Positions 15,765-36,660 of a stretch of 64,000 nt of DNA are shown piece after piece. The translations under genes and the position numbers were made by a program. A model generated the notes under the pieces. It had not been told where the DNA came from. It saw only the letters and a list, made by a program, of their open reading frames with translations, and made no database searches. Origin of the DNA: Bugula neritina (lineage: Eukaryota > Animalia > Bryozoa); the NCBI GenBank assembly GCA_964035545.1, contig OZ037773.1, forward strand, positions 6,229,751 through 6,293,750. The letters are read 5' to 3'. How positions within the stretch are numbered: the first letter of the stretch is position 1; each line of letters opens with the position of its first letter.

Positions 15765-15825
15765 ATATAGTATATAAATACAGTATATATATATATACAG
15801 TATATATATACAGTATATATATACA

Positions 15826-15913
<88 letters not shown>

Positions 15914-16092
15914 TGTATATATATATACTGTATTTATATATATATACTGTATTTATATACAGTATATATATATAAATACAGTATATATATATATACAGTA
16001 TATATATATATACTGTATATATATACAGTATATATATATATACTGTATATAAATACAGTATATATATATATATACAGTATATATATATACTG

Positions 16093-16187
<95 letters not shown>

Positions 16188-16220
16188 TATATATACAGTA
16201 TATATACAGTATATAAATAT
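15765..16220. repeat. Complex (TA)n microsatellite interrupted by ACAGT/ACTGT units
   Basis: Long pure TA runs at about 15828-15912 and 16097-16184, with interspersed tacagta/tactgta units in both orientations. Confidence 0.95.
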
Positions 16221-17036
16221 GTATGTCCTTTTAGCTTAACCTATTAACAAATAAGTACTACTTACAGATGCTATGACTTCTCCCCCCTCGCCTCATGCAC
16301 AGTTTCACCCCCTTTATTCACTCCTTTCAATGAACTAGCTGCCAGGCAAATTGTAGTTATGAGTGAAAGCCCACAGAATTTGCTTGTCAAGTACACCAAG
16401 CAATAGTTAGAAAAATGGAGGTACACGTAAATGCAGTAGTAGAGAAATTGAGAAAAGCCTGGTGTTTTAGATTGGAAATGTAGCAAAAGAGTGGATATGT
16501 TTTCGAAAAAGTTTGAACCAAAATTCTCTAAGAAAGTTTAAGAACTTAGACTGTTGAAGTTTCTCCACTACTGCACATAAATGAAAAATAGTGTAAACTT
16601 TTGCATTATGGTTTATATAATTTTATTTTGGGATTTAAAAACAATTAATTAAATAGGCTTTATATTTTCTAAGATGTAATTAGATTATTATTTCACAAGA
16701 TGGTACTGCATTTAAAAAGTTTGAAGAGCATAGCGCTTTGATGAGAAAGATAAAACAGTTCTAAAACAGCTCTTGGAAGTTAAAAGCATTCTGATTATAA
16801 ACTTTTTGCATTACATCTGTTTAAGCTACTGTTCTTTATAGAAACTTTTGAATATATTGAAAATTGCTCACAGAGGTGCCAACTTTCACCTAACTCTTGG
16901 CTAGTTTGAAGTAACCAGTGTGCATTAACTCAAAACCCGGATGCCGGAAGCTCTAACTGAAGCTAATTATGTGAAACCAGGCAATGTAAAAATAGCATTA
17001 CCTTAGATACCACCTTTGTTACATTGCGTAACCATC

Positions 17037-17595
17037 TGTCACAAAACTGTTGGTAGCAGTGTGACGAGTTCGAAAAGTCTGGTAGTCAGAAGTATATAGA
17101 CAAGTAGCATACAGCTTGCTAATCCAGTTGTGAGTAAATAGAGTTGTGAATAAGTAGACTTTATTTCTCTAGTAAGATATGCACAGATGAATTTATAAAA
17201 ATGAACTCCAAGAATGAACTTATAAAAAGGAACTGCGAGAATAAACTGAACTGTAAACACAACTGCCTCAGTATTTATAGTAAACAAAAAGCTCTAGAAT
17301 ATTCTCAAGCATTCCAGTACAGAAGATTCTAGTAGAAAACATTCCCCACATGCCAATACTATTTATAGAAAATCAAAACAAAACAAAACATTGGAATTTC
17401 CATGGTTATTTCGCAATTATTGCGCAATACCTTGTTTACATTGCTGGGCAGTAGTTAACATGACTAACCAAAATAGTAACAATGAACAATGACCCATCTC
17501 TTTGATTAGTCTAGAATATTTATGAACATTCCTGTATAATCATTAGGAAAAACCTGGTAGGTCTATAGATATATGTACACTCAGAATTTGTGACA
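17037..17595 (-). repeat. LTR (3'-most LTR of the array), 559 bp
   Basis: TG..CA ends with 9-bp inverted repeat TGTCACAAA/TTTGTGACA. Minus-strand TATAAATA at 17360-17367 and 17272-17279, AATAAA at 17160-17165. Confidence 0.96.
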
Positions 17596-17596
17596 A

Positions 17597-17607
17597 CCCC
17601 CCATTCT
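17597..17607 (-). promoter_or_regulatory. Polypurine tract (also at +3876, +7752, +11628)
   Basis: Minus strand AGAATGGGGGG lies one base before the LTR start TGTCACA. Confidence 0.8.
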
Positions 17608-17641
17608 AAGAGAAATTATCTTGATCATTTCTCCTAACTAC

Positions 17642-17765
17642 TTAAAATTCTGAGTCAATTCGGCTTAGATAATCAGCTCCAACATTGTCCTTTCCTTTGA
17701 TTGACTCCACCTTTATTCTGAAGTTCTGTAAATACATAGCCCATCTCATCACTCTGCTGTTTCTT
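17642..17765 (-). pseudogene. Out-of-frame remnant of the RNase H C-terminus (repeated in each unit, ending at 21518, 25394, 29270)
   Basis: RNSRVMRWAMYLQNFRIKVESIKGKDNVGADYLSR matches the Ty3/Gypsy RNase H end consensus R..RW...LQ.F.F.I.Y..GK.N..AD.LSR. It lies in a different frame from the long ORF. Confidence 0.88.
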
Positions 17766-20700
17766 ACTGTACAGATCCAACAAATCATTTTGGCATTCTT
17801 CTCTTTCCTTATCGTGATCAATAATTCCAGCACCAGCAGCATCTAGAGTCATCACAGCTCCAACAGTCATAGAGTCGGTAGGTGTCTCCCGCTCAAAATA
17901 TTTCTTCAGCATGTTGGCATGGTATGTTCTCCTCTTCCCTCTGATGTTGATAATGTAGTCATTCAGTCTGACTTTCTCCTCAATATTGAATGGTCCTTGC
18001 CAATGCATCAGCAATTTATTTCCATCCGTAGGTAGAAGAATGAGCACTTTGTCACCAGGTTTGAAGTCTCTCTGCTTAGCTTTCTTATCAAAATAGTGTT
18101 TGTATCTTTTTTGACTGTCTTTTAGCGAAGCTAGTGCCATCTCCATCATGTCATCTAAACGCTCTCTCAATTCAAAAACATGTTGATAGCAGGTCTTGAC
18201 TTCATCGGCAGTGTCTTCTTTTGTCCAAAGTTGTCGCAGGATGTACATTGGTCCACGCACAGTTCTTCCATAGAGTAACTCGAATGGGGCGAAGCCTGTT
18301 GATTCCTGTGGGACTTCTCTATATGCAAATAGAGCTGCATTGATGAACCGATGCCACTGTCTTGGTTCTTTAGCACACAACTTTTTTAACATACTCTTGA
18401 GGGTTCCGTTGAACTTTTCCACAAGTCCATTGGCCATTGCATGGTATGGTGAGGTAGGAAGTTGTCGCATGTCAAGTAATCTGGTAAACTCTTTCATGTA
18501 GTCCGAGATGAATTGAGTTCCTTGGTCGCTTATCACCTCCTCTGGTATCCCAACACGACTGTATATGTCAAGCAGCGCTTCAGCTACAGTAGCTGAGTCA
18601 ATGTTCTTCAATGGTGTAGCTTCAGGATATCTTGTAGCATAGTCAACTAAAGTTAGGATGTAGCGGTGTCCTTTCTCACTTGGAGGGTTAATTGGTCCGA
18701 TTAGGTCTATTGCACATCTCTTGAATGGGGTGTCAATTAGTGGAGTTTCCTGTACTGGAACTTTCATGACTGAGCCTTTTTTCACCGTCTTCTGGCAAAT
18801 GTCACATGACTGACAGAAACGTACGACATCTCCGTTTAGTCCTGGCCAGAAGAAGTTGGAAAGCACTCTATCAGTGGTTTTCTTTACTCCTAGGTGTCCG
18901 CTCATTATGCAGTCATGAGCTTTCTGTAGAACTTCCTTCCTCAGTGAACTGGGTACCATGAGTTGTTTAACAGGTTTTACACTGACAGGCTTCGAGTCGG
19001 TGTACTCACGGTACAGAATCTTGTTCCTCACCACAAACCTAGTGGTGCATCCCTTTTTCTCCTTCACTTCTTTTGCATCGAAGAAACGTTCCAATGTGGG
19101 GTCATCCCTCTGCAGTCTGGCTATTTCATCTTTCCCTATACTTAATGGGTTAGTATTTGAATCAATCTTCAGTGGTTTGTCTCCTGACTTTTCCTTGACA
19201 GCCTGAGCTCTTGTGGTTACGGCGCAGTCCTTCCAGTTTTCCAGCGGCTGGTCAGCTGATCTCGCTCCATCCACATTCCCAATAAGCAGGTCACAAATCG
19301 TCTTGTCCATTACTGCAGCTTTGACGACTCCATTGTAAAATGGTGAGCGCACTGAGATAAGTGCCCACTGAGCCTCCTTAACACTTGCATCAGCCATCTT
19401 CAGATAAACTGATTCTCCAGTTAAGTGTTGAGGTTGCACATACTTTGCATTGACTACAATGCAACCACAGCCGGTGTCGCGCATTACAGTAGCTCGTTGG
19501 CCATTAACTTCCGCATCAAATATCGCTGTGCCCCCATCTTTGAATTTAGGTCCATTCTTGCAGACAGCAGCGTTGATAAACTTTTTACCATTAACTGTGA
19601 TTTCCGTAGGTTCTTCCACTTTAGATGAGATTCCTGGATCTGTGACCACAGTCTTATTCTGAGTAGTCGCTATTGCAGCAGCAGCATGCACTAACCTCCC
19701 ACCATACTTTCTGCAGTCTGAAGTATTGTGGTTGTTCATCTTGCAATGTGAACAGTGCTTCTTCCCTTGCCGTGGGCAGTTACGAGCAATGTGCGACTTA
19801 TCTTTGCAGATGAAGCATGCACCATCGCTTTTACTTCCTTGTTCAGCATCCATGCTATCGGCAGGCGCGTTTTCCATCCTTTTTGTATTAGTTTTCTTTG
19901 TCTTTGCTAGTTTCCTTCCACGAGCGTGCAAGAACAGTGACGCTGCATCACACATATCCTCACTGCTGTTGTAGGAACTTTGCTTTAAATGCACAGCTAG
20001 GTCGTCTGGGCATGATGATATAAATTGTTCAGTCGCCACTAGTTTGGCTATGTCCATGCCCCCTGAAAGTTCTACCCACTTGTGCACATAAGTTTCTATC
20101 CTAGTGAATAGTTGGGCAGGAGTTTCATCCTCGTAAGCTTCTGCCTCTCTGAGCTTTTTTTTGTAGCCCTCTTGAGTCAAGTTAAAGCGCTCCAACAAGG
20201 CTTCTTTGACTTTTTTATAATCTCTACGGTCGGTAGGTGATAACCGGATGTAAGCTTCTGTTGCTGTACCCCTTAGGTACTGACTGAGATGGTAGGGCCA
20301 ATCTCCCTTGTCCCAGTTACATCCTTCGGCAACCCACTCGAACCGCTCTAAATAGCTATCCATTTCGTCCACCTTCTCATCAAAGAATGGTATTTTTGGT
20401 TTTGGTTTGTTAGCTATTTCTAACCTGGTGCTCTCATGTCTTGAGTGCTCCAAACTTGTGTCAGCTTTCAGCTTTTCCATATCTAATTCATGTCGTTGTC
20501 TTCTCTCTTCTGCCTCCTGGTCAGCTTTAACCTTGAGTGCCATTGCCTCCTGATCAGCTTTAACCTTGAATGCCATTGCCTCCTGATCAGCTTTTATCTT
20601 CATCTCCATTAAGGCTTTCTCATTTTCTTGCCTGATCCTTTCCGCCTCACGCTCTAATCTCCGCTCCTCTCGGTCCTTTTCTTTTTCCTCTCGGTCCTTT

Positions 20701-20816
20701 TCTTTTTCTTCTTGTGCAGCAACAATGGGTAGGTTCTTTTCAACAAAAGCTACGAGCTTGTCATCCACCAGTCCAAGATCTTTACCCATCTGTGTCACTC
20801 TCTCCAACAACGCCAT
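17673..20816 (-). CDS. Gag-protease-integrase polyprotein lacking RT, copy 1
   Basis: N-terminal coiled coil; Gag core (YLERFE..A...W); two CCHC knuckles (CFICKDKSHIARNC, CSHCKMNNHNTSDC); aspartic protease RDTGC and DLLIGN; integrase HHCC (HDCIMSGH...CDIC), DDE (IDLIGP, ISDQG, VEKFN) and GPF motif. No YxDD RT motif. Confidence 0.95.
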   Translation of the reverse strand: MALLERVTQMGKDLGLVDDKLVAFVEKNLPIVAAQEEKEKDREEKEKDREERRLEREAERIRQENEKALMEMKIKADQEAMAFKVKADQEAMALKVKADQEAEERRQRHELDMEKLKADTSLEHSRHESTRLEIANKPKPKIPFFDEKVDEMDSYLERFEWVAEGCNWDKGDWPYHLSQYLRGTATEAYIRLSPTDRRDYKKVKEALLERFNLTQEGYKKKLREAEAYEDETPAQLFTRIETYVHKWVELSGGMDIAKLVATEQFISSCPDDLAVHLKQSSYNSSEDMCDAASLFLHARGRKLAKTKKTNTKRMENAPADSMDAEQGSKSDGACFICKDKSHIARNCPRQGKKHCSHCKMNNHNTSDCRKYGGRLVHAAAAIATTQNKTVVTDPGISSKVEEPTEITVNGKKFINAAVCKNGPKFKDGGTAIFDAEVNGQRATVMRDTGCGCIVVNAKYVQPQHLTGESVYLKMADASVKEAQWALISVRSPFYNGVVKAAVMDKTICDLLIGNVDGARSADQPLENWKDCAVTTRAQAVKEKSGDKPLKIDSNTNPLSIGKDEIARLQRDDPTLERFFDAKEVKEKKGCTTRFVVRNKILYREYTDSKPVSVKPVKQLMVPSSLRKEVLQKAHDCIMSGHLGVKKTTDRVLSNFFWPGLNGDVVRFCQSCDICQKTVKKGSVMKVPVQETPLIDTPFKRCAIDLIGPINPPSEKGHRYILTLVDYATRYPEATPLKNIDSATVAEALLDIYSRVGIPEEVISDQGTQFISDYMKEFTRLLDMRQLPTSPYHAMANGLVEKFNGTLKSMLKKLCAKEPRQWHRFINAALFAYREVPQESTGFAPFELLYGRTVRGPMYILRQLWTKEDTADEVKTCYQHVFELRERLDDMMEMALASLKDSQKRYKHYFDKKAKQRDFKPGDKVLILLPTDGNKLLMHWQGPFNIEEKVRLNDYIINIRGKRRTYHANMLKKYFERETPTDSMTVGAVMTLDAAGAGIIDHDKEREECQNDLLDLYSKKQQSDEMGYVFTELQNKGGVNQRKGQCWS

Positions 20817-20892
20817 AATGTCTCAACAACCGTTAATTAATCCTGTGTATACTCACGTTGTAACTAATAACTTCCCTGTGTGCGACTGAGAC

Positions 20893-20910
20893 TTCCCGGA
20901 GCAGCCCCCA
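20893..20910 (-). promoter_or_regulatory. Primer-binding site, tRNA-Pro type (also 24769-24786, 28645-28662, 32521-32538)
   Basis: TGGGGGCTGCTCCGGGAA, 2 nt after the LTR end; 15/18 match to the canonical tRNA-Pro PBS TGGGGGCTCGTCCGGGAT. Confidence 0.85.
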
Positions 20911-20912
20911 AT

Positions 20913-21471
20913 TGTCACAAAACTGTTGGTAGCAGTGTGACGAGTTCGAAAAGTCTGGTAGTCAGAAGTATATAGACAAGTAGCATACAGCTTGCTAATC
21001 CAGTTGTGAGTAAATAGAGTTGTGAATAAGTAGACTTTATTTCTCTAGTAAGATATGCACAGATGAATTTATAAAAATGAACTCCAAGAATGAACTTATA
21101 AAAAGGAACTGCGAGAATAAACTGAACTGTAAACACAACTGCCTCAGTATTTATAGTAAACAAAAAGCTCTAGAATATTCTCAAGCATTCCAGTACAGAA
21201 GATTCTAGTAGAAAACATTCCCCACATGCCAATACTATTTATAGAAAATCAAAACAAAACAAAACATTGGAATTTCCATGGTTATTTCGCAATTATTGCG
21301 CAATACCTTGTTTACATTGCTGGGCAGTAGTTAACATGACTAACCAAAATAGTAACAATGAACAATGACCCATCTCTTTGATTAGTCTAGAATATTTATG
21401 AACATTCCTGTATAATCATTAGGAAAAACCTGGTAGGTCTATAGATATATGTACACTCAGAATTTGTGACA
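20913..21471 (-). repeat. Shared internal LTR 2
   Basis: Same sequence as 17037-17595, with a PBS on one side and a PPT on the other. Confidence 0.96.
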
Positions 21472-21548
21472 ACCCCCCATTCTAAGAGAAATTATCTTGA
21501 TCATTTCTCCTAACTACTTAAAATTCTGAGTCAATTCGGCTTAGATAA

Positions 21549-24500
21549 TCAGCTCCAACATTGTCCTTTCCTTTGATTGACTCCACCTTTATTCTGAAGT
21601 TCTGTAAATACATAGCCCATCTCATCACTCTGCTGTTTCTTACTGTACAGATCCAACAAATCATTTTGGCATTCTTCTCTTTCCTTATCGTGATCAATAA
21701 TTCCAGCACCAGCAGCATCTAGAGTCATCACAGCTCCAACAGTCATAGAGTCGGTAGGTGTCTCCCGCTCAAAATATTTCTTCAGCATGTTGGCATGGTA
21801 TGTTCTCCTCTTCCCTCTGATGTTGATAATGTAGTCATTCAGTCTGACTTTCTCCTCAATATTGAATGGTCCTTGCCAATGCATCAGCAATTTATTTCCA
21901 TCCGTAGGTAGAAGAATGAGCACTTTGTCACCAGGTTTGAAGTCTCTCTGCTTAGCTTTCTTATCAAAATAGTGTTTGTATCTTTTTTGACTGTCTTTTA
22001 GCGAAGCTAGTGCCATCTCCATCATGTCATCTAAACGCTCTCTCAATTCAAAAACATGTTGATAGCAGGTCTTGACTTCATCGGCAGTGTCTTCTTTTGT
22101 CCAAAGTTGTCGCAGGATGTACATTGGTCCACGCACAGTTCTTCCATAGAGTAACTCGAATGGGGCGAAGCCTGTTGATTCCTGTGGGACTTCTCTATAT
22201 GCAAATAGAGCTGCATTGATGAACCGATGCCACTGTCTTGGTTCTTTAGCACACAACTTTTTTAACATACTCTTGAGGGTTCCGTTGAACTTTTCCACAA
22301 GTCCATTGGCCATTGCATGGTATGGTGAGGTAGGAAGTTGTCGCATGTCAAGTAATCTGGTAAACTCTTTCATGTAGTCCGAGATGAATTGAGTTCCTTG
22401 GTCGCTTATCACCTCCTCTGGTATCCCAACACGACTGTATATGTCAAGCAGCGCTTCAGCTACAGTAGCTGAGTCAATGTTCTTCAATGGTGTAGCTTCA
22501 GGATATCTTGTAGCATAGTCAACTAAAGTTAGGATGTAGCGGTGTCCTTTCTCACTTGGAGGGTTAATTGGTCCGATTAGGTCTATTGCACATCTCTTGA
22601 ATGGGGTGTCAATTAGTGGAGTTTCCTGTACTGGAACTTTCATGACTGAGCCTTTTTTCACCGTCTTCTGGCAAATGTCACATGACTGACAGAAACGTAC
22701 GACATCTCCGTTTAGTCCTGGCCAGAAGAAGTTGGAAAGCACTCTATCAGTGGTTTTCTTTACTCCTAGGTGTCCGCTCATTATGCAGTCATGAGCTTTC
22801 TGTAGAACTTCCTTCCTCAGTGAACTGGGTACCATGAGTTGTTTAACAGGTTTTACACTGACAGGCTTCGAGTCGGTGTACTCACGGTACAGAATCTTGT
22901 TCCTCACCACAAACCTAGTGGTGCATCCCTTTTTCTCCTTCACTTCTTTTGCATCGAAGAAACGTTCCAATGTGGGGTCATCCCTCTGCAGTCTGGCTAT
23001 TTCATCTTTCCCTATACTTAATGGGTTAGTATTTGAATCAATCTTCAGTGGTTTGTCTCCTGACTTTTCCTTGACAGCCTGAGCTCTTGTGGTTACGGCG
23101 CAGTCCTTCCAGTTTTCCAGCGGCTGGTCAGCTGATCTCGCTCCATCCACATTCCCAATAAGCAGGTCACAAATCGTCTTGTCCATTACTGCAGCTTTGA
23201 CGACTCCATTGTAAAATGGTGAGCGCACTGAGATAAGTGCCCACTGAGCCTCCTTAACACTTGCATCAGCCATCTTCAGATAAACTGATTCTCCAGTTAA
23301 GTGTTGAGGTTGCACATACTTTGCATTGACTACAATGCAACCACAGCCGGTGTCGCGCATTACAGTAGCTCGTTGGCCATTAACTTCCGCATCAAATATC
23401 GCTGTGCCCCCATCTTTGAATTTAGGTCCATTCTTGCAGACAGCAGCGTTGATAAACTTTTTACCATTAACTGTGATTTCCGTAGGTTCTTCCACTTTAG
23501 ATGAGATTCCTGGATCTGTGACCACAGTCTTATTCTGAGTAGTCGCTATTGCAGCAGCAGCATGCACTAACCTCCCACCATACTTTCTGCAGTCTGAAGT
23601 ATTGTGGTTGTTCATCTTGCAATGTGAACAGTGCTTCTTCCCTTGCCGTGGGCAGTTACGAGCAATGTGCGACTTATCTTTGCAGATGAAGCATGCACCA
23701 TCGCTTTTACTTCCTTGTTCAGCATCCATGCTATCGGCAGGCGCGTTTTCCATCCTTTTTGTATTAGTTTTCTTTGTCTTTGCTAGTTTCCTTCCACGAG
23801 CGTGCAAGAACAGTGACGCTGCATCACACATATCCTCACTGCTGTTGTAGGAACTTTGCTTTAAATGCACAGCTAGGTCGTCTGGGCATGATGATATAAA
23901 TTGTTCAGTCGCCACTAGTTTGGCTATGTCCATGCCCCCTGAAAGTTCTACCCACTTGTGCACATAAGTTTCTATCCTAGTGAATAGTTGGGCAGGAGTT
24001 TCATCCTCGTAAGCTTCTGCCTCTCTGAGCTTTTTTTTGTAGCCCTCTTGAGTCAAGTTAAAGCGCTCCAACAAGGCTTCTTTGACTTTTTTATAATCTC
24101 TACGGTCGGTAGGTGATAACCGGATGTAAGCTTCTGTTGCTGTACCCCTTAGGTACTGACTGAGATGGTAGGGCCAATCTCCCTTGTCCCAGTTACATCC
24201 TTCGGCAACCCACTCGAACCGCTCTAAATAGCTATCCATTTCGTCCACCTTCTCATCAAAGAATGGTATTTTTGGTTTTGGTTTGTTAGCTATTTCTAAC
24301 CTGGTGCTCTCATGTCTTGAGTGCTCCAAACTTGTGTCAGCTTTCAGCTTTTCCATATCTAATTCATGTCGTTGTCTTCTCTCTTCTGCCTCCTGGTCAG
24401 CTTTAACCTTGAGTGCCATTGCCTCCTGATCAGCTTTAACCTTGAATGCCATTGCCTCCTGATCAGCTTTTATCTTCATCTCCATTAAGGCTTTCTCATT

Positions 24501-24692
24501 TTCTTGCCTGATCCTTTCCGCCTCACGCTCTAATCTCCGCTCCTCTCGGTCCTTTTCTTTTTCCTCTCGGTCCTTTTCTTTTTCTTCTTGTGCAGCAACA
24601 ATGGGTAGGTTCTTTTCAACAAAAGCTACGAGCTTGTCATCCACCAGTCCAAGATCTTTACCCATCTGTGTCACTCTCTCCAACAACGCCAT
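21549..24692 (-). CDS. Gag-protease-integrase polyprotein lacking RT, copy 2
   Basis: Translation identical to copy 1. Confidence 0.95.
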   Translation of the reverse strand: MALLERVTQMGKDLGLVDDKLVAFVEKNLPIVAAQEEKEKDREEKEKDREERRLEREAERIRQENEKALMEMKIKADQEAMAFKVKADQEAMALKVKADQEAEERRQRHELDMEKLKADTSLEHSRHESTRLEIANKPKPKIPFFDEKVDEMDSYLERFEWVAEGCNWDKGDWPYHLSQYLRGTATEAYIRLSPTDRRDYKKVKEALLERFNLTQEGYKKKLREAEAYEDETPAQLFTRIETYVHKWVELSGGMDIAKLVATEQFISSCPDDLAVHLKQSSYNSSEDMCDAASLFLHARGRKLAKTKKTNTKRMENAPADSMDAEQGSKSDGACFICKDKSHIARNCPRQGKKHCSHCKMNNHNTSDCRKYGGRLVHAAAAIATTQNKTVVTDPGISSKVEEPTEITVNGKKFINAAVCKNGPKFKDGGTAIFDAEVNGQRATVMRDTGCGCIVVNAKYVQPQHLTGESVYLKMADASVKEAQWALISVRSPFYNGVVKAAVMDKTICDLLIGNVDGARSADQPLENWKDCAVTTRAQAVKEKSGDKPLKIDSNTNPLSIGKDEIARLQRDDPTLERFFDAKEVKEKKGCTTRFVVRNKILYREYTDSKPVSVKPVKQLMVPSSLRKEVLQKAHDCIMSGHLGVKKTTDRVLSNFFWPGLNGDVVRFCQSCDICQKTVKKGSVMKVPVQETPLIDTPFKRCAIDLIGPINPPSEKGHRYILTLVDYATRYPEATPLKNIDSATVAEALLDIYSRVGIPEEVISDQGTQFISDYMKEFTRLLDMRQLPTSPYHAMANGLVEKFNGTLKSMLKKLCAKEPRQWHRFINAALFAYREVPQESTGFAPFELLYGRTVRGPMYILRQLWTKEDTADEVKTCYQHVFELRERLDDMMEMALASLKDSQKRYKHYFDKKAKQRDFKPGDKVLILLPTDGNKLLMHWQGPFNIEEKVRLNDYIINIRGKRRTYHANMLKKYFERETPTDSMTVGAVMTLDAAGAGIIDHDKEREECQNDLLDLYSKKQQSDEMGYVFTELQNKGGVNQRKGQCWS

Positions 24693-24788
24693 AATGTCTC
24701 AACAACCGTTAATTAATCCTGTGTATACTCACGTTGTAACTAATAACTTCCCTGTGTGCGACTGAGACTTCCCGGAGCAGCCCCCAAT

Positions 24789-25347
24789 TGTCACAAAACT
24801 GTTGGTAGCAGTGTGACGAGTTCGAAAAGTCTGGTAGTCAGAAGTATATAGACAAGTAGCATACAGCTTGCTAATCCAGTTGTGAGTAAATAGAGTTGTG
24901 AATAAGTAGACTTTATTTCTCTAGTAAGATATGCACAGATGAATTTATAAAAATGAACTCCAAGAATGAACTTATAAAAAGGAACTGCGAGAATAAACTG
25001 AACTGTAAACACAACTGCCTCAGTATTTATAGTAAACAAAAAGCTCTAGAATATTCTCAAGCATTCCAGTACAGAAGATTCTAGTAGAAAACATTCCCCA
25101 CATGCCAATACTATTTATAGAAAATCAAAACAAAACAAAACATTGGAATTTCCATGGTTATTTCGCAATTATTGCGCAATACCTTGTTTACATTGCTGGG
25201 CAGTAGTTAACATGACTAACCAAAATAGTAACAATGAACAATGACCCATCTCTTTGATTAGTCTAGAATATTTATGAACATTCCTGTATAATCATTAGGA
25301 AAAACCTGGTAGGTCTATAGATATATGTACACTCAGAATTTGTGACA
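24789..25347 (-). repeat. Shared internal LTR 3
   Basis: Same sequence as LTR 1 at offset 2x3876. Confidence 0.96.
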
Positions 25348-25424
25348 ACCCCCCATTCTAAGAGAAATTATCTTGATCATTTCTCCTAACTACTTAAAAT
25401 TCTGAGTCAATTCGGCTTAGATAA

Positions 25425-28400
25425 TCAGCTCCAACATTGTCCTTTCCTTTGATTGACTCCACCTTTATTCTGAAGTTCTGTAAATACATAGCCCATCTCA
25501 TCACTCTGCTGTTTCTTACTGTACAGATCCAACAAATCATTTTGGCATTCTTCTCTTTCCTTATCGTGATCAATAATTCCAGCACCAGCAGCATCTAGAG
25601 TCATCACAGCTCCAACAGTCATAGAGTCGGTAGGTGTCTCCCGCTCAAAATATTTCTTCAGCATGTTGGCATGGTATGTTCTCCTCTTCCCTCTGATGTT
25701 GATAATGTAGTCATTCAGTCTGACTTTCTCCTCAATATTGAATGGTCCTTGCCAATGCATCAGCAATTTATTTCCATCCGTAGGTAGAAGAATGAGCACT
25801 TTGTCACCAGGTTTGAAGTCTCTCTGCTTAGCTTTCTTATCAAAATAGTGTTTGTATCTTTTTTGACTGTCTTTTAGCGAAGCTAGTGCCATCTCCATCA
25901 TGTCATCTAAACGCTCTCTCAATTCAAAAACATGTTGATAGCAGGTCTTGACTTCATCGGCAGTGTCTTCTTTTGTCCAAAGTTGTCGCAGGATGTACAT
26001 TGGTCCACGCACAGTTCTTCCATAGAGTAACTCGAATGGGGCGAAGCCTGTTGATTCCTGTGGGACTTCTCTATATGCAAATAGAGCTGCATTGATGAAC
26101 CGATGCCACTGTCTTGGTTCTTTAGCACACAACTTTTTTAACATACTCTTGAGGGTTCCGTTGAACTTTTCCACAAGTCCATTGGCCATTGCATGGTATG
26201 GTGAGGTAGGAAGTTGTCGCATGTCAAGTAATCTGGTAAACTCTTTCATGTAGTCCGAGATGAATTGAGTTCCTTGGTCGCTTATCACCTCCTCTGGTAT
26301 CCCAACACGACTGTATATGTCAAGCAGCGCTTCAGCTACAGTAGCTGAGTCAATGTTCTTCAATGGTGTAGCTTCAGGATATCTTGTAGCATAGTCAACT
26401 AAAGTTAGGATGTAGCGGTGTCCTTTCTCACTTGGAGGGTTAATTGGTCCGATTAGGTCTATTGCACATCTCTTGAATGGGGTGTCAATTAGTGGAGTTT
26501 CCTGTACTGGAACTTTCATGACTGAGCCTTTTTTCACCGTCTTCTGGCAAATGTCACATGACTGACAGAAACGTACGACATCTCCGTTTAGTCCTGGCCA
26601 GAAGAAGTTGGAAAGCACTCTATCAGTGGTTTTCTTTACTCCTAGGTGTCCGCTCATTATGCAGTCATGAGCTTTCTGTAGAACTTCCTTCCTCAGTGAA
26701 CTGGGTACCATGAGTTGTTTAACAGGTTTTACACTGACAGGCTTCGAGTCGGTGTACTCACGGTACAGAATCTTGTTCCTCACCACAAACCTAGTGGTGC
26801 ATCCCTTTTTCTCCTTCACTTCTTTTGCATCGAAGAAACGTTCCAATGTGGGGTCATCCCTCTGCAGTCTGGCTATTTCATCTTTCCCTATACTTAATGG
26901 GTTAGTATTTGAATCAATCTTCAGTGGTTTGTCTCCTGACTTTTCCTTGACAGCCTGAGCTCTTGTGGTTACGGCGCAGTCCTTCCAGTTTTCCAGCGGC
27001 TGGTCAGCTGATCTCGCTCCATCCACATTCCCAATAAGCAGGTCACAAATCGTCTTGTCCATTACTGCAGCTTTGACGACTCCATTGTAAAATGGTGAGC
27101 GCACTGAGATAAGTGCCCACTGAGCCTCCTTAACACTTGCATCAGCCATCTTCAGATAAACTGATTCTCCAGTTAAGTGTTGAGGTTGCACATACTTTGC
27201 ATTGACTACAATGCAACCACAGCCGGTGTCGCGCATTACAGTAGCTCGTTGGCCATTAACTTCCGCATCAAATATCGCTGTGCCCCCATCTTTGAATTTA
27301 GGTCCATTCTTGCAGACAGCAGCGTTGATAAACTTTTTACCATTAACTGTGATTTCCGTAGGTTCTTCCACTTTAGATGAGATTCCTGGATCTGTGACCA
27401 CAGTCTTATTCTGAGTAGTCGCTATTGCAGCAGCAGCATGCACTAACCTCCCACCATACTTTCTGCAGTCTGAAGTATTGTGGTTGTTCATCTTGCAATG
27501 TGAACAGTGCTTCTTCCCTTGCCGTGGGCAGTTACGAGCAATGTGCGACTTATCTTTGCAGATGAAGCATGCACCATCGCTTTTACTTCCTTGTTCAGCA
27601 TCCATGCTATCGGCAGGCGCGTTTTCCATCCTTTTTGTATTAGTTTTCTTTGTCTTTGCTAGTTTCCTTCCACGAGCGTGCAAGAACAGTGACGCTGCAT
27701 CACACATATCCTCACTGCTGTTGTAGGAACTTTGCTTTAAATGCACAGCTAGGTCGTCTGGGCATGATGATATAAATTGTTCAGTCGCCACTAGTTTGGC
27801 TATGTCCATGCCCCCTGAAAGTTCTACCCACTTGTGCACATAAGTTTCTATCCTAGTGAATAGTTGGGCAGGAGTTTCATCCTCGTAAGCTTCTGCCTCT
27901 CTGAGCTTTTTTTTGTAGCCCTCTTGAGTCAAGTTAAAGCGCTCCAACAAGGCTTCTTTGACTTTTTTATAATCTCTACGGTCGGTAGGTGATAACCGGA
28001 TGTAAGCTTCTGTTGCTGTACCCCTTAGGTACTGACTGAGATGGTAGGGCCAATCTCCCTTGTCCCAGTTACATCCTTCGGCAACCCACTCGAACCGCTC
28101 TAAATAGCTATCCATTTCGTCCACCTTCTCATCAAAGAATGGTATTTTTGGTTTTGGTTTGTTAGCTATTTCTAACCTGGTGCTCTCATGTCTTGAGTGC
28201 TCCAAACTTGTGTCAGCTTTCAGCTTTTCCATATCTAATTCATGTCGTTGTCTTCTCTCTTCTGCCTCCTGGTCAGCTTTAACCTTGAGTGCCATTGCCT
28301 CCTGATCAGCTTTAACCTTGAATGCCATTGCCTCCTGATCAGCTTTTATCTTCATCTCCATTAAGGCTTTCTCATTTTCTTGCCTGATCCTTTCCGCCTC

Positions 28401-28568
28401 ACGCTCTAATCTCCGCTCCTCTCGGTCCTTTTCTTTTTCCTCTCGGTCCTTTTCTTTTTCTTCTTGTGCAGCAACAATGGGTAGGTTCTTTTCAACAAAA
28501 GCTACGAGCTTGTCATCCACCAGTCCAAGATCTTTACCCATCTGTGTCACTCTCTCCAACAACGCCAT
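25425..28568 (-). CDS. Gag-protease-integrase polyprotein lacking RT, copy 3
   Basis: Translation identical to copy 1. Confidence 0.95.
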   Translation of the reverse strand: MALLERVTQMGKDLGLVDDKLVAFVEKNLPIVAAQEEKEKDREEKEKDREERRLEREAERIRQENEKALMEMKIKADQEAMAFKVKADQEAMALKVKADQEAEERRQRHELDMEKLKADTSLEHSRHESTRLEIANKPKPKIPFFDEKVDEMDSYLERFEWVAEGCNWDKGDWPYHLSQYLRGTATEAYIRLSPTDRRDYKKVKEALLERFNLTQEGYKKKLREAEAYEDETPAQLFTRIETYVHKWVELSGGMDIAKLVATEQFISSCPDDLAVHLKQSSYNSSEDMCDAASLFLHARGRKLAKTKKTNTKRMENAPADSMDAEQGSKSDGACFICKDKSHIARNCPRQGKKHCSHCKMNNHNTSDCRKYGGRLVHAAAAIATTQNKTVVTDPGISSKVEEPTEITVNGKKFINAAVCKNGPKFKDGGTAIFDAEVNGQRATVMRDTGCGCIVVNAKYVQPQHLTGESVYLKMADASVKEAQWALISVRSPFYNGVVKAAVMDKTICDLLIGNVDGARSADQPLENWKDCAVTTRAQAVKEKSGDKPLKIDSNTNPLSIGKDEIARLQRDDPTLERFFDAKEVKEKKGCTTRFVVRNKILYREYTDSKPVSVKPVKQLMVPSSLRKEVLQKAHDCIMSGHLGVKKTTDRVLSNFFWPGLNGDVVRFCQSCDICQKTVKKGSVMKVPVQETPLIDTPFKRCAIDLIGPINPPSEKGHRYILTLVDYATRYPEATPLKNIDSATVAEALLDIYSRVGIPEEVISDQGTQFISDYMKEFTRLLDMRQLPTSPYHAMANGLVEKFNGTLKSMLKKLCAKEPRQWHRFINAALFAYREVPQESTGFAPFELLYGRTVRGPMYILRQLWTKEDTADEVKTCYQHVFELRERLDDMMEMALASLKDSQKRYKHYFDKKAKQRDFKPGDKVLILLPTDGNKLLMHWQGPFNIEEKVRLNDYIINIRGKRRTYHANMLKKYFERETPTDSMTVGAVMTLDAAGAGIIDHDKEREECQNDLLDLYSKKQQSDEMGYVFTELQNKGGVNQRKGQCWS

Positions 28569-28664
28569 AATGTCTCAACAACCGTTAATTAATCCTGTGT
28601 ATACTCACGTTGTAACTAATAACTTCCCTGTGTGCGACTGAGACTTCCCGGAGCAGCCCCCAAT

Positions 28665-29223
28665 TGTCACAAAACTGTTGGTAGCAGTGTGACGAGTTCG
28701 AAAAGTCTGGTAGTCAGAAGTATATAGACAAGTAGCATACAGCTTGCTAATCCAGTTGTGAGTAAATAGAGTTGTGAATAAGTAGACTTTATTTCTCTAG
28801 TAAGATATGCACAGATGAATTTATAAAAATGAACTCCAAGAATGAACTTATAAAAAGGAACTGCGAGAATAAACTGAACTGTAAACACAACTGCCTCAGT
28901 ATTTATAGTAAACAAAAAGCTCTAGAATATTCTCAAGCATTCCAGTACAGAAGATTCTAGTAGAAAACATTCCCCACATGCCAATACTATTTATAGAAAA
29001 TCAAAACAAAACAAAACATTGGAATTTCCATGGTTATTTCGCAATTATTGCGCAATACCTTGTTTACATTGCTGGGCAGTAGTTAACATGACTAACCAAA
29101 ATAGTAACAATGAACAATGACCCATCTCTTTGATTAGTCTAGAATATTTATGAACATTCCTGTATAATCATTAGGAAAAACCTGGTAGGTCTATAGATAT
29201 ATGTACACTCAGAATTTGTGACA
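28665..29223 (-). repeat. Shared internal LTR 4
   Basis: Same sequence as LTR 1 at offset 3x3876. Confidence 0.96.
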
Positions 29224-29300
29224 ACCCCCCATTCTAAGAGAAATTATCTTGATCATTTCTCCTAACTACTTAAAATTCTGAGTCAATTCGGCTTAGATAA

Positions 29301-32300
29301 TCAGCTCCAACATTGTCCTTTCCTTTGATTGACTCCACCTTTATTCTGAAGTTCTGTAAATACATAGCCCATCTCATCACTCTGCTGTTTCTTACTGTAC
29401 AGATCCAACAAATCATTTTGGCATTCTTCTCTTTCCTTATCGTGATCAATAATTCCAGCACCAGCAGCATCTAGAGTCATCACAGCTCCAACAGTCATAG
29501 AGTCGGTAGGTGTCTCCCGCTCAAAATATTTCTTCAGCATGTTGGCATGGTATGTTCTCCTCTTCCCTCTGATGTTGATAATGTAGTCATTCAGTCTGAC
29601 TTTCTCCTCAATATTGAATGGTCCTTGCCAATGCATCAGCAATTTATTTCCATCCGTAGGTAGAAGAATGAGCACTTTGTCACCAGGTTTGAAGTCTCTC
29701 TGCTTAGCTTTCTTATCAAAATAGTGTTTGTATCTTTTTTGACTGTCTTTTAGCGAAGCTAGTGCCATCTCCATCATGTCATCTAAACGCTCTCTCAATT
29801 CAAAAACATGTTGATAGCAGGTCTTGACTTCATCGGCAGTGTCTTCTTTTGTCCAAAGTTGTCGCAGGATGTACATTGGTCCACGCACAGTTCTTCCATA
29901 GAGTAACTCGAATGGGGCGAAGCCTGTTGATTCCTGTGGGACTTCTCTATATGCAAATAGAGCTGCATTGATGAACCGATGCCACTGTCTTGGTTCTTTA
30001 GCACACAACTTTTTTAACATACTCTTGAGGGTTCCGTTGAACTTTTCCACAAGTCCATTGGCCATTGCATGGTATGGTGAGGTAGGAAGTTGTCGCATGT
30101 CAAGTAATCTGGTAAACTCTTTCATGTAGTCCGAGATGAATTGAGTTCCTTGGTCGCTTATCACCTCCTCTGGTATCCCAACACGACTGTATATGTCAAG
30201 CAGCGCTTCAGCTACAGTAGCTGAGTCAATGTTCTTCAATGGTGTAGCTTCAGGATATCTTGTAGCATAGTCAACTAAAGTTAGGATGTAGCGGTGTCCT
30301 TTCTCACTTGGAGGGTTAATTGGTCCGATTAGGTCTATTGCACATCTCTTGAATGGGGTGTCAATTAGTGGAGTTTCCTGTACTGGAACTTTCATGACTG
30401 AGCCTTTTTTCACCGTCTTCTGGCAAATGTCACATGACTGACAGAAACGTACGACATCTCCGTTTAGTCCTGGCCAGAAGAAGTTGGAAAGCACTCTATC
30501 AGTGGTTTTCTTTACTCCTAGGTGTCCGCTCATTATGCAGTCATGAGCTTTCTGTAGAACTTCCTTCCTCAGTGAACTGGGTACCATGAGTTGTTTAACA
30601 GGTTTTACACTGACAGGCTTCGAGTCGGTGTACTCACGGTACAGAATCTTGTTCCTCACCACAAACCTAGTGGTGCATCCCTTTTTCTCCTTCACTTCTT
30701 TTGCATCGAAGAAACGTTCCAATGTGGGGTCATCCCTCTGCAGTCTGGCTATTTCATCTTTCCCTATACTTAATGGGTTAGTATTTGAATCAATCTTCAG
30801 TGGTTTGTCTCCTGACTTTTCCTTGACAGCCTGAGCTCTTGTGGTTACGGCGCAGTCCTTCCAGTTTTCCAGCGGCTGGTCAGCTGATCTCGCTCCATCC
30901 ACATTCCCAATAAGCAGGTCACAAATCGTCTTGTCCATTACTGCAGCTTTGACGACTCCATTGTAAAATGGTGAGCGCACTGAGATAAGTGCCCACTGAG
31001 CCTCCTTAACACTTGCATCAGCCATCTTCAGATAAACTGATTCTCCAGTTAAGTGTTGAGGTTGCACATACTTTGCATTGACTACAATGCAACCACAGCC
31101 GGTGTCGCGCATTACAGTAGCTCGTTGGCCATTAACTTCCGCATCAAATATCGCTGTGCCCCCATCTTTGAATTTAGGTCCATTCTTGCAGACAGCAGCG
31201 TTGATAAACTTTTTACCATTAACTGTGATTTCCGTAGGTTCTTCCACTTTAGATGAGATTCCTGGATCTGTGACCACAGTCTTATTCTGAGTAGTCGCTA
31301 TTGCAGCAGCAGCATGCACTAACCTCCCACCATACTTTCTGCAGTCTGAAGTATTGTGGTTGTTCATCTTGCAATGTGAACAGTGCTTCTTCCCTTGCCG
31401 TGGGCAGTTACGAGCAATGTGCGACTTATCTTTGCAGATGAAGCATGCACCATCGCTTTTACTTCCTTGTTCAGCATCCATGCTATCGGCAGGCGCGTTT
31501 TCCATCCTTTTTGTATTAGTTTTCTTTGTCTTTGCTAGTTTCCTTCCACGAGCGTGCAAGAACAGTGACGCTGCATCACACATATCCTCACTGCTGTTGT
31601 AGGAACTTTGCTTTAAATGCACAGCTAGGTCGTCTGGGCATGATGATATAAATTGTTCAGTCGCCACTAGTTTGGCTATGTCCATGCCCCCTGAAAGTTC
31701 TACCCACTTGTGCACATAAGTTTCTATCCTAGTGAATAGTTGGGCAGGAGTTTCATCCTCGTAAGCTTCTGCCTCTCTGAGCTTTTTTTTGTAGCCCTCT
31801 TGAGTCAAGTTAAAGCGCTCCAACAAGGCTTCTTTGACTTTTTTATAATCTCTACGGTCGGTAGGTGATAACCGGATGTAAGCTTCTGTTGCTGTACCCC
31901 TTAGGTACTGACTGAGATGGTAGGGCCAATCTCCCTTGTCCCAGTTACATCCTTCGGCAACCCACTCGAACCGCTCTAAATAGCTATCCATTTCGTCCAC
32001 CTTCTCATCAAAGAATGGTATTTTTGGTTTTGGTTTGTTAGCTATTTCTAACCTGGTGCTCTCATGTCTTGAGTGCTCCAAACTTGTGTCAGCTTTCAGC
32101 TTTTCCATATCTAATTCATGTCGTTGTCTTCTCTCTTCTGCCTCCTGGTCAGCTTTAACCTTGAGTGCCATTGCCTCCTGATCAGCTTTAACCTTGAATG
32201 CCATTGCCTCCTGATCAGCTTTTATCTTCATCTCCATTAAGGCTTTCTCATTTTCTTGCCTGATCCTTTCCGCCTCACGCTCTAATCTCCGCTCCTCTCG

Positions 32301-32444
32301 GTCCTTTTCTTTTTCCTCTCGGTCCTTTTCTTTTTCTTCTTGTGCAGCAACAATGGGTAGGTTCTTTTCAACAAAAGCTACGAGCTTGTCATCCACCAGT
32401 CCAAGATCTTTACCCATCTGTGTCACTCTCTCCAACAACGCCAT
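29301..32444 (-). CDS. Gag-protease-integrase polyprotein lacking RT, copy 4
   Basis: Translation identical to copy 1. Confidence 0.95.
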   Translation of the reverse strand: MALLERVTQMGKDLGLVDDKLVAFVEKNLPIVAAQEEKEKDREEKEKDREERRLEREAERIRQENEKALMEMKIKADQEAMAFKVKADQEAMALKVKADQEAEERRQRHELDMEKLKADTSLEHSRHESTRLEIANKPKPKIPFFDEKVDEMDSYLERFEWVAEGCNWDKGDWPYHLSQYLRGTATEAYIRLSPTDRRDYKKVKEALLERFNLTQEGYKKKLREAEAYEDETPAQLFTRIETYVHKWVELSGGMDIAKLVATEQFISSCPDDLAVHLKQSSYNSSEDMCDAASLFLHARGRKLAKTKKTNTKRMENAPADSMDAEQGSKSDGACFICKDKSHIARNCPRQGKKHCSHCKMNNHNTSDCRKYGGRLVHAAAAIATTQNKTVVTDPGISSKVEEPTEITVNGKKFINAAVCKNGPKFKDGGTAIFDAEVNGQRATVMRDTGCGCIVVNAKYVQPQHLTGESVYLKMADASVKEAQWALISVRSPFYNGVVKAAVMDKTICDLLIGNVDGARSADQPLENWKDCAVTTRAQAVKEKSGDKPLKIDSNTNPLSIGKDEIARLQRDDPTLERFFDAKEVKEKKGCTTRFVVRNKILYREYTDSKPVSVKPVKQLMVPSSLRKEVLQKAHDCIMSGHLGVKKTTDRVLSNFFWPGLNGDVVRFCQSCDICQKTVKKGSVMKVPVQETPLIDTPFKRCAIDLIGPINPPSEKGHRYILTLVDYATRYPEATPLKNIDSATVAEALLDIYSRVGIPEEVISDQGTQFISDYMKEFTRLLDMRQLPTSPYHAMANGLVEKFNGTLKSMLKKLCAKEPRQWHRFINAALFAYREVPQESTGFAPFELLYGRTVRGPMYILRQLWTKEDTADEVKTCYQHVFELRERLDDMMEMALASLKDSQKRYKHYFDKKAKQRDFKPGDKVLILLPTDGNKLLMHWQGPFNIEEKVRLNDYIINIRGKRRTYHANMLKKYFERETPTDSMTVGAVMTLDAAGAGIIDHDKEREECQNDLLDLYSKKQQSDEMGYVFTELQNKGGVNQRKGQCWS

Positions 32445-32540
32445 AATGTCTCAACAACCGTTAATTAATCCTGTGTATACTCACGTTGTAACTAATAACT
32501 TCCCTGTGTGCGACTGAGACTTCCCGGAGCAGCCCCCAAT

Positions 32541-33099
32541 TGTCACAAAACTGTTGGTAGCAGTGTGACGAGTTCGAAAAGTCTGGTAGTCAGAAGTATA
32601 TAGACAAGTAGCATACAGCTTGCTAATCCAGTTGTGAGTAAATAGAGTTGTGAATAAGTAGACTTTATTTCTCTAGTAAGATATGCACAGATGAATTTAT
32701 AAAAATGAACTCCAAGAATGAACTTATAAAAAGGAACTGCGAGAATAAACTGAACTGTAAACACAACTGCCTCAGTATTTATAGTAAACAAAAAGCTCTA
32801 GAATATTCTCAAGCATTCCAGTACAGAAGATTCTAGTAGAAAACATTCCCCACATGCCAATACTATTTATAGAAAATCAAAACAAAACAAAACATTGGAA
32901 TTTCCATGGTTATTTCGCAATTATTGCGCAATACCTTGTTTACATTGCTGGGCAGTAGTTAACATGACTAACCAAAATAGTAACAATGAACAATGACCCA
33001 TCTCTTTGATTAGTCTAGAATATTTATGAACATTCCTGTATAATCATTAGGAAAAACCTGGTAGGTCTATAGATATATGTACACTCAGAATTTGTGACA
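32541..33099 (-). repeat. LTR 5 (5'-most LTR of the array)
   Basis: Same sequence as LTR 1, followed directly by the TSD CCATC. Confidence 0.96.
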
Positions 33100-35745
33100 C
33101 CATCTTTAATCTGGTTCGGAGAGAATAAGCTGCTGAAAGTATGAAATGGAATCTCTGTTATGCGGATGAAGTGACAGATAAACTTTGAGACGAGACATGT
33201 GTACATTGTGACTGATTTATGAGAGCCTGTACCACAGCGTGCTGCTACCCTGACTTTCTGCAGTGGCCCACATTTGCGAGGATTTGCGGTTAGCTGTATC
33301 ACCTTGCGCTAATCTCTGCTTTGCACAGCAACAACAACTTCAACGCATTATTACCTCTATTGACATTAGCTTGCGCTTTATTTCCATCTATTTTAAGCTA
33401 ATCCACCAGAATTGCATTTGACAGAATGGTACGGGAATGTCCCAGTTTAACGATCTGCTGATGCTATTTATAACTGCTAATATTATATCCACCCGCTGTA
33501 GATATAGCCTGAACTGTGATATTTTTAAGCTTTGCAGTTGATCAATCATTATTATAATTATTATGATATTTTTTTTCAATCAAAATACTAGACAGTTGAT
33601 TGTAAATATGATGGCTTTAAGTTCCCAGTAGTGACTGCTGGTATCTCAAACACAACTTGCATTTATTGAACTTGTTGAAGTTGGTAACTTGGTGCTGACA
33701 GCTTCAGTTATTGTAGCATAAGAGCAATTATAAATAGTTGCTTTTGCTGACATCACCACTACCGGATGTCTGGCCTTGAGGTAACATATATGCCAAGGCA
33801 GGTTCTCCCTTTCTCAAATAGCCAGTGTTGGTAGTTAAAGTATTGTTACGTGACAGCACTCTGAATGTAGAGCTTCAGCCAAATGATAGTATTATTGTTA
33901 TTCAGAAGAAGAGCAAGTGATAGTCATCAGATGCAATATTATATAATATATATTGTCATTTAGGCAGCTCTAACAGTACAATGATGTATCGTTATATTAT
34001 ACAGTGCTATGGTGTACAGTGTCAATAGGTCAGTATACTATTTCACAATAACACAATGGATATTCAGTGGTAGGAGATTTCACAGTTCGTGTCAAACTTT
34101 TTGCCAACACCAAAGCCCTGTAAGTTCATTTCAGCAGTAATAGGGAAGAGAAGGGCACATGATAAGAGGTTTTTGATAAATCTTCTGCTACTCAAATTGT
34201 TCAGCCATTTTAAAATACTCCTGATAAAAGGCATGCCTAGTCACCTACACTGCGGTTTCATTGGCTAAGACAATATGCATGTTAGCCAATTTTCTGCATG
34301 TGCAGTTTATTGAAATTATATAATACTTAATACTATAAAACCAAGAAATTAAAAAGGGTTTCACAAAACTCGCAATTAAGAGAACAACTACTAAAATATT
34401 CAATTTCTTACAACTAATTATTGAGTGCAGATAACTCCATCAAACAGTTTTATAATGAAGATTTTGCAATTTACATTTGCAAATTTATTCATTTTAAACT
34501 TCACACGAATGTGGTTATGTCTCATATCAGTCAAGAGTTCACCTGGTCTTATGTACACAAAGCATGTCCTGGTTAGAACTGTTTGCATGATTTAAATATC
34601 CAAATGTACAAATTTCTTCATGGGAATTAATTAATCTGCAGCGACTTATTCACTAACAATTAAATTCAATCAAATATATTGAAAATCTAAATTAAATAAT
34701 AAGAATTTTATCATATTGCAACATGTAAATTATGATACTCTAAAAGTTTGGTTGAATTGCAGAGAAATTGTCTCTTTTCATAATAAATTTTATCTAAAAC
34801 ACTGGTTATGATTATTTTTTCAGTTTTACAAGTAGATATTTACAAAAGTAGCTAAACAACATTATCAGTGATAGGACAATAGTTAATTATTTGGTGATTC
34901 AAATCTTTAACTTAGCAAACTTTTTGGATTCAATCAAACTAATCTTTTTAAAAAACCTCATGTTTTGTAGCTATTGTCATTTCCTGGTTGCCTAAAACTA
35001 CGAAAATGTTTTGGTTGTAGGATTATATTAATCATATATTTATGTACTGATATATTGCAACAACGTAATATAGTATATATTCATTTAGTTCACAAGGTAG
35101 AAAATAAATTACACGATGAATAAAGTTGAGCAGAAATATTAACTGAAATTACTGTAAAATATTCAAACATCTTTAATGCAGCATAATTAAATGGTTCTTT
35201 ACTAAAAACATATATGACAACAGTAATACTGTTTCTTTTTTTTGACAGAAAATAACAATTAGCTAAGTATAAATCTAAAATTTATACAGATAATATAAAT
35301 TAGTAGGGACAAAAAATATGTTGAAACTCAATTGTAATAAATTCAAAATCTCAGGTAAAGGAACTGCATTACATAAATTAGATAATCTATACATTTCAAT
35401 CTATAAATTATAAATTATAAATAAAGTTGATGATATAATTATTCTAGAATTGTGTGTGTTAGTAAAAACATAAATTTAGTAAAATAACATGGAAATCTTG
35501 CAGAGCATAACTTTGATTTTATCTCCAAGAAATTCTAACTATTTAAAACTGTAAACCAAATAATTTTTGCAAAAATAACACAGCCAAGGAGAGCTAGAGA
35601 CCAAAAAATAGCTTCAATTTTTGAAAATGGGTAAGGAACACAAAAATAGAACTTAGATATAGAATAATTAAATAGACAACATACTGATTATACACTAACA
35701 TTGAATTGAGAGCAAAAGAATACATAAATACAATAAATAGTTATA

Positions 35746-35984: not shown

Positions 35985-36660
35985 TCACATGCGAGACAAC
36001 TCCTTCTCTAAAATATCACCCCACGTGTTTACATCCAGTTGGTACTTTCTAGAATAAAGTCGGGAGTCCTCTGGGTGACAGATAGAACTGAAAGTGCCTC
36101 TCAGCCACTGCTGTTTGTAGGCAGCTGCACCATAGTTCTTCACAAAGTGATGCTAAAAATAGATTCTACCTGCTTAGAACATATTGTAGCAAAATGGCTC
36201 TCTGCCATAGAGTCGTATTAGATATACAGGCACATTTCAACTGCTAGGAGTTTACAAAAGAGAAGTTGTTCTCTCTTGAAATTTTAATTTATCACCAATA
36301 CTCAGTATACATATAAGCCTACAAGTGCAGTGCAACTTAAGTGCTTAAAATTTTAAACTTCATAACACAAATATGTTTAAATACACTCATTGATACATAC
36401 TTTATTTTCTTATAGATGATATTAAAATGCTTTTGACAAAAATTACATGCACAATTCTGATTTACCTTCCACGTTGAGAGTTCTAGGTTAGCCTTAGGTA
36501 TTCCAAACACAGAGCATTGATACCTCCATGTTATCCAGCTGTTGTTAATAAACTCACGGAAATATTTATTGACTGAACTCAAGGAAACCAAACTTTTCAC
36601 ATCCAGCAAAAGGACAACCTTTTCAATTATTTCAACAGGGAGCTTCTCGAAATATTGCAT
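35985..36660 (-). CDS. FBXO48: F-box only protein 48-like; 2 coding exons
   Basis: Exon 36466-36660 encodes an F-box (LPVEIIEKVVLLLDVKSL..LSSVNKYFR). It joins in phase 0 to 35985-36152, HHFVKNY...KQQWLRGTFSSI...LDVNTWGDILEKELSRM*, which resembles the FBXO48 C-terminus (W..G..S.I...D..TWG.ILE.EL.R). Confidence 0.8.

Follow-up and report, generated by a model that had tools for sequence, protein, structure and literature searches.

An assembled four-unit array of a predicted non-autonomous Ty3/gypsy retrotransposon with shared long terminal repeats in the bryozoan Bugula neritina

We examined a 64,000-nucleotide stretch of the Bugula neritina genome assembly (contig OZ037773.1, positions 6,229,751 to 6,293,750, or G000:C9:6229751-6293750 in our coordinates), hereafter the window, in which a long terminal repeat (LTR) retrotransposon forms a tandem array at 17037-33099. 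The array reads LTR-I-LTR-I-LTR-I-LTR-I-LTR, where I is the internal region, and its 16,063 bp equal 4 x 3876 + 559, each 3876-bp period being made up of one 559-bp LTR and one 3317-bp internal region. The element is oriented on the minus strand. From left to right, the array begins after a target-site duplication (TSD) of sequence CCATC, to which no strand is assigned (17032-17036), with LTR 1 (17037-17595, minus strand, as are all the LTRs and internal regions that follow), which is the 3' LTR of unit 1 and, in element orientation, the outermost 3' LTR of the array. It is followed by internal region 1 (17596-20912) and by LTR 2 (20913-21471), which serves as both the 5' LTR of unit 1 and the 3' LTR of unit 2. 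Internal region 2 (21472-24788), the shared LTR 3 (24789-25347), internal region 3 (25348-28664), the shared LTR 4 (28665-29223) and internal region 4 (29224-32540) continue the series up to LTR 5 (32541-33099), the outermost 5' LTR in element orientation, which abuts the right copy of the TSD (CCATC, 33100-33104, again without strand). The five LTRs, starting at 17037, 20913, 24789, 28665 and 32541, all have the form TGTCAC...GTGACA.

When the window was compared with itself at an offset of 3876, there were 0 mismatches over 17037-29223 (12,187 positions), and in the Tandem Repeats Finder output the same set of small internal repeats reappears every 3876 bp. Each internal junction consists of one intact 559-bp LTR with 0 added bases and 0 further target duplications, and the single 5-bp CCATC duplication surrounds the whole array. 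The locus thus shows what distinguishes a shared-LTR tandem, namely n internal regions with n + 1 LTRs, one TSD, and neither filler nor TSD at the internal junctions. A first-pass annotation of this DNA had described the same arrangement, including the exact period, the shared LTRs and the lone CCATC around 16 kb, and all of its coordinates and numbers proved correct; its claim that the units are identical was borne out by the alignment and by the four identical reading frames described below. The four-unit shared-LTR array is confirmed as assembled sequence, as distinct from physical DNA. The junctions also bear on whether the units could have accumulated by repeated independent insertion, either twice at the same site or one inside another. 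Tandems are known to arise by double insertion at one target (PMC5932611), but this would leave a TSD or abutting LTRs at the junctions, and the clean single-LTR junctions rule this out, so that we give repeated insertion practically no credence.

Each unit carries an open reading frame (ORF) for a Gag-protease-integrase (Gag-PR-IN) protein of 1047 amino acids on the minus strand, at 17673-20816 in unit 1 and, with identical translation, at 21549-24692, 25425-28568 and 29301-32444 in the other units. Pfam matches in this ORF were Integrase_H2C2 (3e-20) and rve (9e-12), together with a SCAN-like capsid match that lies below the Pfam curated cut-off; neither a reverse transcriptase (RT) nor an RNase H domain was found by the Pfam search of the ORF. 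Two CCHC knuckles (CX2CX4HX4C) and a DTG protease motif were read from the translation, and with the Pfam integrase domains they uphold the Gag-PR-IN coding content proposed in the first pass. A 33-bp tandem repeat of 2.5 copies, situated within gag at 20511-20594 and recurring at +3876 intervals, encodes a repeated KADQEAMA motif.

The signals in cis that reverse transcription would use are intact throughout the array. An 18-nt primer-binding site (PBS) lies 2 nt from the LTR (20893-20910, minus strand), recurs every 3876 bp, and is fully complementary to the 3' end, with CCA added, of the host tRNA-Pro(CGG), whose gene is at G000:C2:7716150-7716221. The polypurine tract (PPT) of internal region 1, with the purine-rich sequence AGAATGGGGGGT, adjoins the 3' LTR (17596-17607, minus strand). 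Every unit retains its PBS, its PPT and an LTR on either side. TATA-like motifs and one AATAAA in sense orientation were found in the LTR by pattern matching only. With TG...CA terminal repeats, a short TSD, a PBS, a PPT and Gag, PR and IN domains, the unit has the makeup of a Ty3/gypsy LTR retrotransposon, and by its predicted protein it is a non-autonomous member of that group, encoding Gag-PR-IN and no RT.

A search of the genome assembly (216 Mb) showed that the array belongs to a family of about 90 candidate copies. This 3.3-kb RT-less internal region recurs, at 95-98% identity, in at least 40 dispersed copies, the frame is open in nearly all of the approximately 44 copies scored, and ORF length ranges from 1040 to 1053 amino acids across family copies. 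We retrieved and examined 13 dispersed copies (L001-L013). All 13 are ordinary LTR-I-LTR insertions with matching 5-bp target duplications, a pattern with which a single integrase-mediated integration at the array site is in keeping. The two LTRs are free of mismatches and gaps in 11 of the 13 copies, with no mismatches in L003; the LTR pair of L002 has 6 gap columns and no mismatches, and that of L012 has two mismatches. L008 is an otherwise ordinary copy with a 758-bp insertion in one LTR (L008:5720-6998).

The dispersed copies diverge from each other by several percent. The copy closest to the array unit is L001 (C9:7.88 Mb, TSD GGTGT), which differs from it at 9 internal positions and, per LTR, by 7 substitutions and an 11-bp indel; for the other copies, synonymous divergence (dS) is 0.05-0.09. 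Judged from these comparisons, the family is a set of diverse lineages, every one of which appears to have inserted very recently. Complete identity inside the array is not surprising in itself, because the family copies are all such recent insertions, and the first-pass proposal of one integration accompanied by very recent amplification fits a family in which 11 of 13 dispersed LTR pairs are identical.

Some relatives carry longer frames (1486-1496 amino acids). Three autonomous relatives of 5.6-5.7 kb, with frames of 1486-1493 amino acids, were located at L002:1822-7489, L003:2554-8180 and L024:1871-7567. In L002 (5668 bp) and L003 (5627 bp), a single frame has the order Gag-PR-IN-RT-RNase H, in which IN spans approximately residues 614-792, RT 1110-1275 and RNase H 1333-1468; over residues 1-1028 these proteins share 96% identity with the array protein. 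The placement of integrase ahead of RT is the hallmark of the Gmr1 group of Ty3/gypsy (PMC8220671, citing Goodwin and Poulter). Like the Gmr1-like elements described there, L002 and L003 encode integrase ahead of both RT and RNase H in a single Gag-Pol frame, and by gene order these autonomous relatives would be classed as Gmr1-like. The array unit, unlike Gmr1-like elements, has no RT or RNase H.

Compared with L002, L003 and L024, the array unit has a deletion of about 1.3 kb that removes RT and RNase H; the two alignments share about 9 nt where they meet, at a junction that in internal region 1 lies at approximately 17753-17761 (minus strand). All RT-less copies align contiguously over this junction, which suggests that the deletion arose once. 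Among the 12 RT-less ORFs (L001, L004-L013 and the array), mean nonsynonymous divergence (dN) was 0.011 and mean dS 0.066, a ratio of 0.17. Because of this ratio, the RT-less lineage is interpreted as keeping Gag-PR-IN under purifying selection, probably relying on RT from other elements. The LTRs nearest to the array LTR are those of L024 (99%), whereas the nearest internal region is that of L001; this mismatch hints at recombination between lineages.

Two further searches addressed recombination products of the family. Five single LTRs (L018-L022) have matching 5-bp duplications on either side (GTAAA, AATAG, GACAG, TTGAG and ACAAT). They are solo LTRs, which LTR-LTR recombination leaves behind as its deletion product, and therefore homologous recombination between LTRs acts on the family. 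Additional tandems were sought with a query made of the end of the internal region, the LTR and the start of the internal region. Among the best 40 of 218 candidates, which were scored, full-length I-LTR-I matches occurred only at the window's three junctions.

Public sequencing data were used to evaluate the physical reality of the array. Unit 4, LTR 5 and 2.1 kb of the right flank were compared with the ten public runs that contain the sequence, all in the form of Logan k=31 contigs. LTR copies collapse in such a graph, and k=31 contigs cannot separate a tandem from a single element because the collapsed LTRs give the same circular path. Run X7 (2023, same organism label) contains an unbroken 2775-nt contig that extends from 30 nt inside LTR 5 into the right flank with one difference, at a depth of 124 that equals the depth of the flank. 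The junction of LTR 5 with the right flank is thus present in X7, with no branch from an empty allele, although X7 may come from the assembled sample and would then not be independent support. Depth over the element in X7 is 3,000-45,000 versus 124 on the flank, which reflects the whole family and not the copy number of the array.

A second run, X1 (2016, a "symbiont metagenome"), has a 561-nt contig with an approximately 96% match to the right flank (33099-33574) that starts exactly at 33099 and is preceded by 81 further upstream letters that do not match the LTR. The base preceding CCATC is A both in the left flank and at the LTR end, and for this reason an empty-site allele would begin aligning at exactly 33099. 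The X1 contig is compatible with another individual or lineage having an empty-site allele, without proving one. The exact 22-nt empty-site pattern had no match in the metagenome contigs. Contigs encoding the 1047-amino acid protein were sought as a source of independent assembly and none was on record, and a search of the B. neritina assembly for an alternative haplotig was negative, each flank occurring there once except for an (AT)n tract.

These data bear most directly on the explanation that the array is an assembly artefact, with one LTR-I-LTR or some other number of units at the site and with the identity of the units arising from consensus building or polishing. Zero differences in four units is also what an artefact would give, the k=31 contigs with their collapsed LTRs offer no spanning evidence, and this is the family's only array among the best 40 of 218 candidates. 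Set against this are the complete LTRs at both ends, the perfect TSD, the unique flanks and the LTR/flank junction in X7, and identity of the units would be expected anyway in a family where the two LTRs are identical in 11 of 13 dispersed copies. Long-read assemblers usually collapse identical tandem units rather than expand them, and because of this tendency the count of four units is more likely a floor than an excess. We consider it unlikely that the array is an artefact.

The explanation that we favour over complementary DNA (cDNA) routes and assembly error, and to which we give about an even chance, is one integration followed by unequal exchange between LTRs and units. Ectopic recombination between LTRs is a textbook model for the formation of shared-LTR tandems, and in Drosophila unequal exchange between LTRs is accepted as their chief source (PMC5932611). 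An RT-less derivative of a Gmr1-like Ty3/gypsy element would have been mobilized with RT supplied in trans by autonomous relatives, and integrase would have inserted it once at this site, producing the CCATC duplication. Homologous exchange could next have occurred out of register, with the 5' LTR on one chromatid or homologue recombining with the 3' LTR on its partner, and have generated LTR-I-LTR-I-LTR; further unequal exchange between the tandem 3.9-kb units could have produced four units, or more if the assembly under-counts them. We infer this order of events and the exchange mechanism; exact periodicity, clean junctions, the single TSD, single-copy flanks, the right-flank junction in X7 and the five solo LTRs of the family all support exchange. 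Copying of a resident unit is favoured because the four units are identical while all other sampled copies differ.

Several points weigh against this reading. The array may be mis-sized or wrong, as its I-LTR-I linkage comes from the assembly alone. At least two successive exchanges are needed, and these must have been fast enough to leave zero substitutions in 16 kb. The junction search found no dimer or trimer of the family among the best 40 of 218 candidates, and sequence alone does not separate exchange from cDNA routes drawing on transcripts of the element itself. The 0 differences over approximately 11.6 kb of duplicated sequence would place the amplification within roughly the last 10^4-10^5 generations if 10^-8 to 10^-9 mutations per site per generation are assumed, a bound that gene conversion could relax.

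In a cDNA-mediated origin, cDNA would have recombined into a resident copy, or a multimeric cDNA would have formed beforehand and then integrated. The recombination could take the form of homologous recombination, Rad52-type single-strand annealing or a one-LTR circle, with units one LTR apart in the product. Both routes have been shown experimentally (Tf1, PMC11042837; Ty1, cited in PMC7524711), and the family is highly active, so cDNA should be plentiful. A single step would explain four units without dimers elsewhere (best 40 of 218 candidates), and the complete terminal LTRs and normal TSD of the array are as for a multimer inserted by integrase. However, the sampled copies are all distinct, the nearest differing at 9 internal sites as well as in its LTRs, which means that the donors must all have shared the array lineage, and no other array was found among the approximately 90 candidate copies when the best 40 of 218 junction candidates were scored. 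On balance, a cDNA-mediated origin seems improbable to us. The particular form of it in which the array was inserted in one step, as a multimeric cDNA of a trans-mobilized RT-less element, we regard as very doubtful. Were this form true, the array would be natural metazoan evidence for a Ty1-type multimer pathway, and read-through RNA from arrays could breed new arrays, a pathway leading straight from a retrotransposon to a satellite.

Both this type of structure and the mechanisms proposed for it were known before from yeasts, plants, Drosophila and bivalves, and present understanding is unchanged by this example. The first-pass annotation had placed shared-LTR tandems mainly in plants, terminal-repeat retrotransposons in miniature (TRIMs) and a few model organisms, which understates their frequency in animals, given that in Drosophila tandems arise frequently in most LTR families, as a rule via LTR recombination (McGurk and Barbash 2018, PMC5932611). 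As in our array, the tandems of Drosophila melanogaster have one LTR between elements; these young and polymorphic tandems are ascribed to ectopic LTR-LTR recombination and have been proposed as satellite seeds (PMC5932611). The Drosophila tandems were inferred from short-read junctions and are mostly autonomous dimers, whereas here a four-unit, non-autonomous array was assembled in another animal lineage.

The earlier list of mechanisms, comprising unequal exchange, a circle and a concatemer, covered routes that we also considered, but it omitted the recombination of cDNA into a resident copy that has been shown for Tf1/Ty1 (PMC11042837). Tf1 cDNA gives rise to tandems with one LTR between units by single-strand annealing that depends on Rad52, and both integrase-lacking and wild-type Tf1 form such tandems at resident copies (Li et al., PMC11042837). 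The same study reports ten Tf tandems in natural Schizosaccharomyces pombe isolates, mostly of identical elements, and lists yeasts, bivalves and plants as carriers of shared-LTR tandems. For Saccharomyces cerevisiae, Ty1 cDNA multimers and multimeric arrays are cited in PMC7524711 (Bryk et al. 2001). The array resembles Tf1/Tf2 and Ty1 tandems in that its units lie one LTR apart, and natural S. pombe multi-unit tandems likewise consist mostly of identical elements. Rad52-dependent cDNA recombination was shown in yeast, whereas in B. neritina the identity of the units against a diverse pool of copies leans toward exchange between resident copies.

In plants, arrays built from Cassandra TRIMs can reach 12 or more units (Kalendar et al. 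2020, PMC7215508). These share with our array the pattern of n internal domains and n + 1 LTRs of a non-autonomous LTR element, and they show copy-number variation and read-through transcripts (PMC7215508). Cassandra units are non-coding and sub-kilobase in size, in contrast to the 3.9-kb array unit with its intact Gag-PR-IN frame, which appears to be under purifying selection. What is particular to the present case is the combination of four units with zero divergence, a unit that is coding but RT-less, and a Gmr1-like parent.

If physically real, the array is a clean, zero-age shared-LTR tandem in a non-model animal, with both ends, the TSD and all cis signals intact. The family also holds solo LTRs, the other product of LTR-LTR recombination, and because a zero-age intact array and solo LTRs occur in the same family, the array could serve as a natural starting point for measuring rates of array expansion, contraction and satellite seeding. 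The terms "nascent satellite" and "copy-number-variable cassette", which had been suggested for the locus in the first pass, are speculative, as no other array was found among the best 40 of 218 candidates and four units do not make a satellite. Satellite DNA would form a long array with units numbering from tens to thousands, usually at more than one locus or within heterochromatin, and here a single locus carries four.

The array appears to be intergenic or intronic. ORF fragments at 9146-9445, 36337-36660 and 55376-56469 resemble exons of a Ras-like small GTPase, an F-box protein and a nucleotide-sugar-transporter-like membrane protein, respectively, by a by-eye reading of their translations. 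A 460-bp (AT)n tract at 15765-16224 lies 0.8 kb to the left of the array, and similar tracts match many genomic sites on both strands. Farther to the right, two consecutive near-identical ORF pairs (90-101 and 95 amino acids) occupy 40735-41979 on the minus strand at a spacing of approximately 655-690 bp, which suggests a local tandem duplication of about 0.7 kb.

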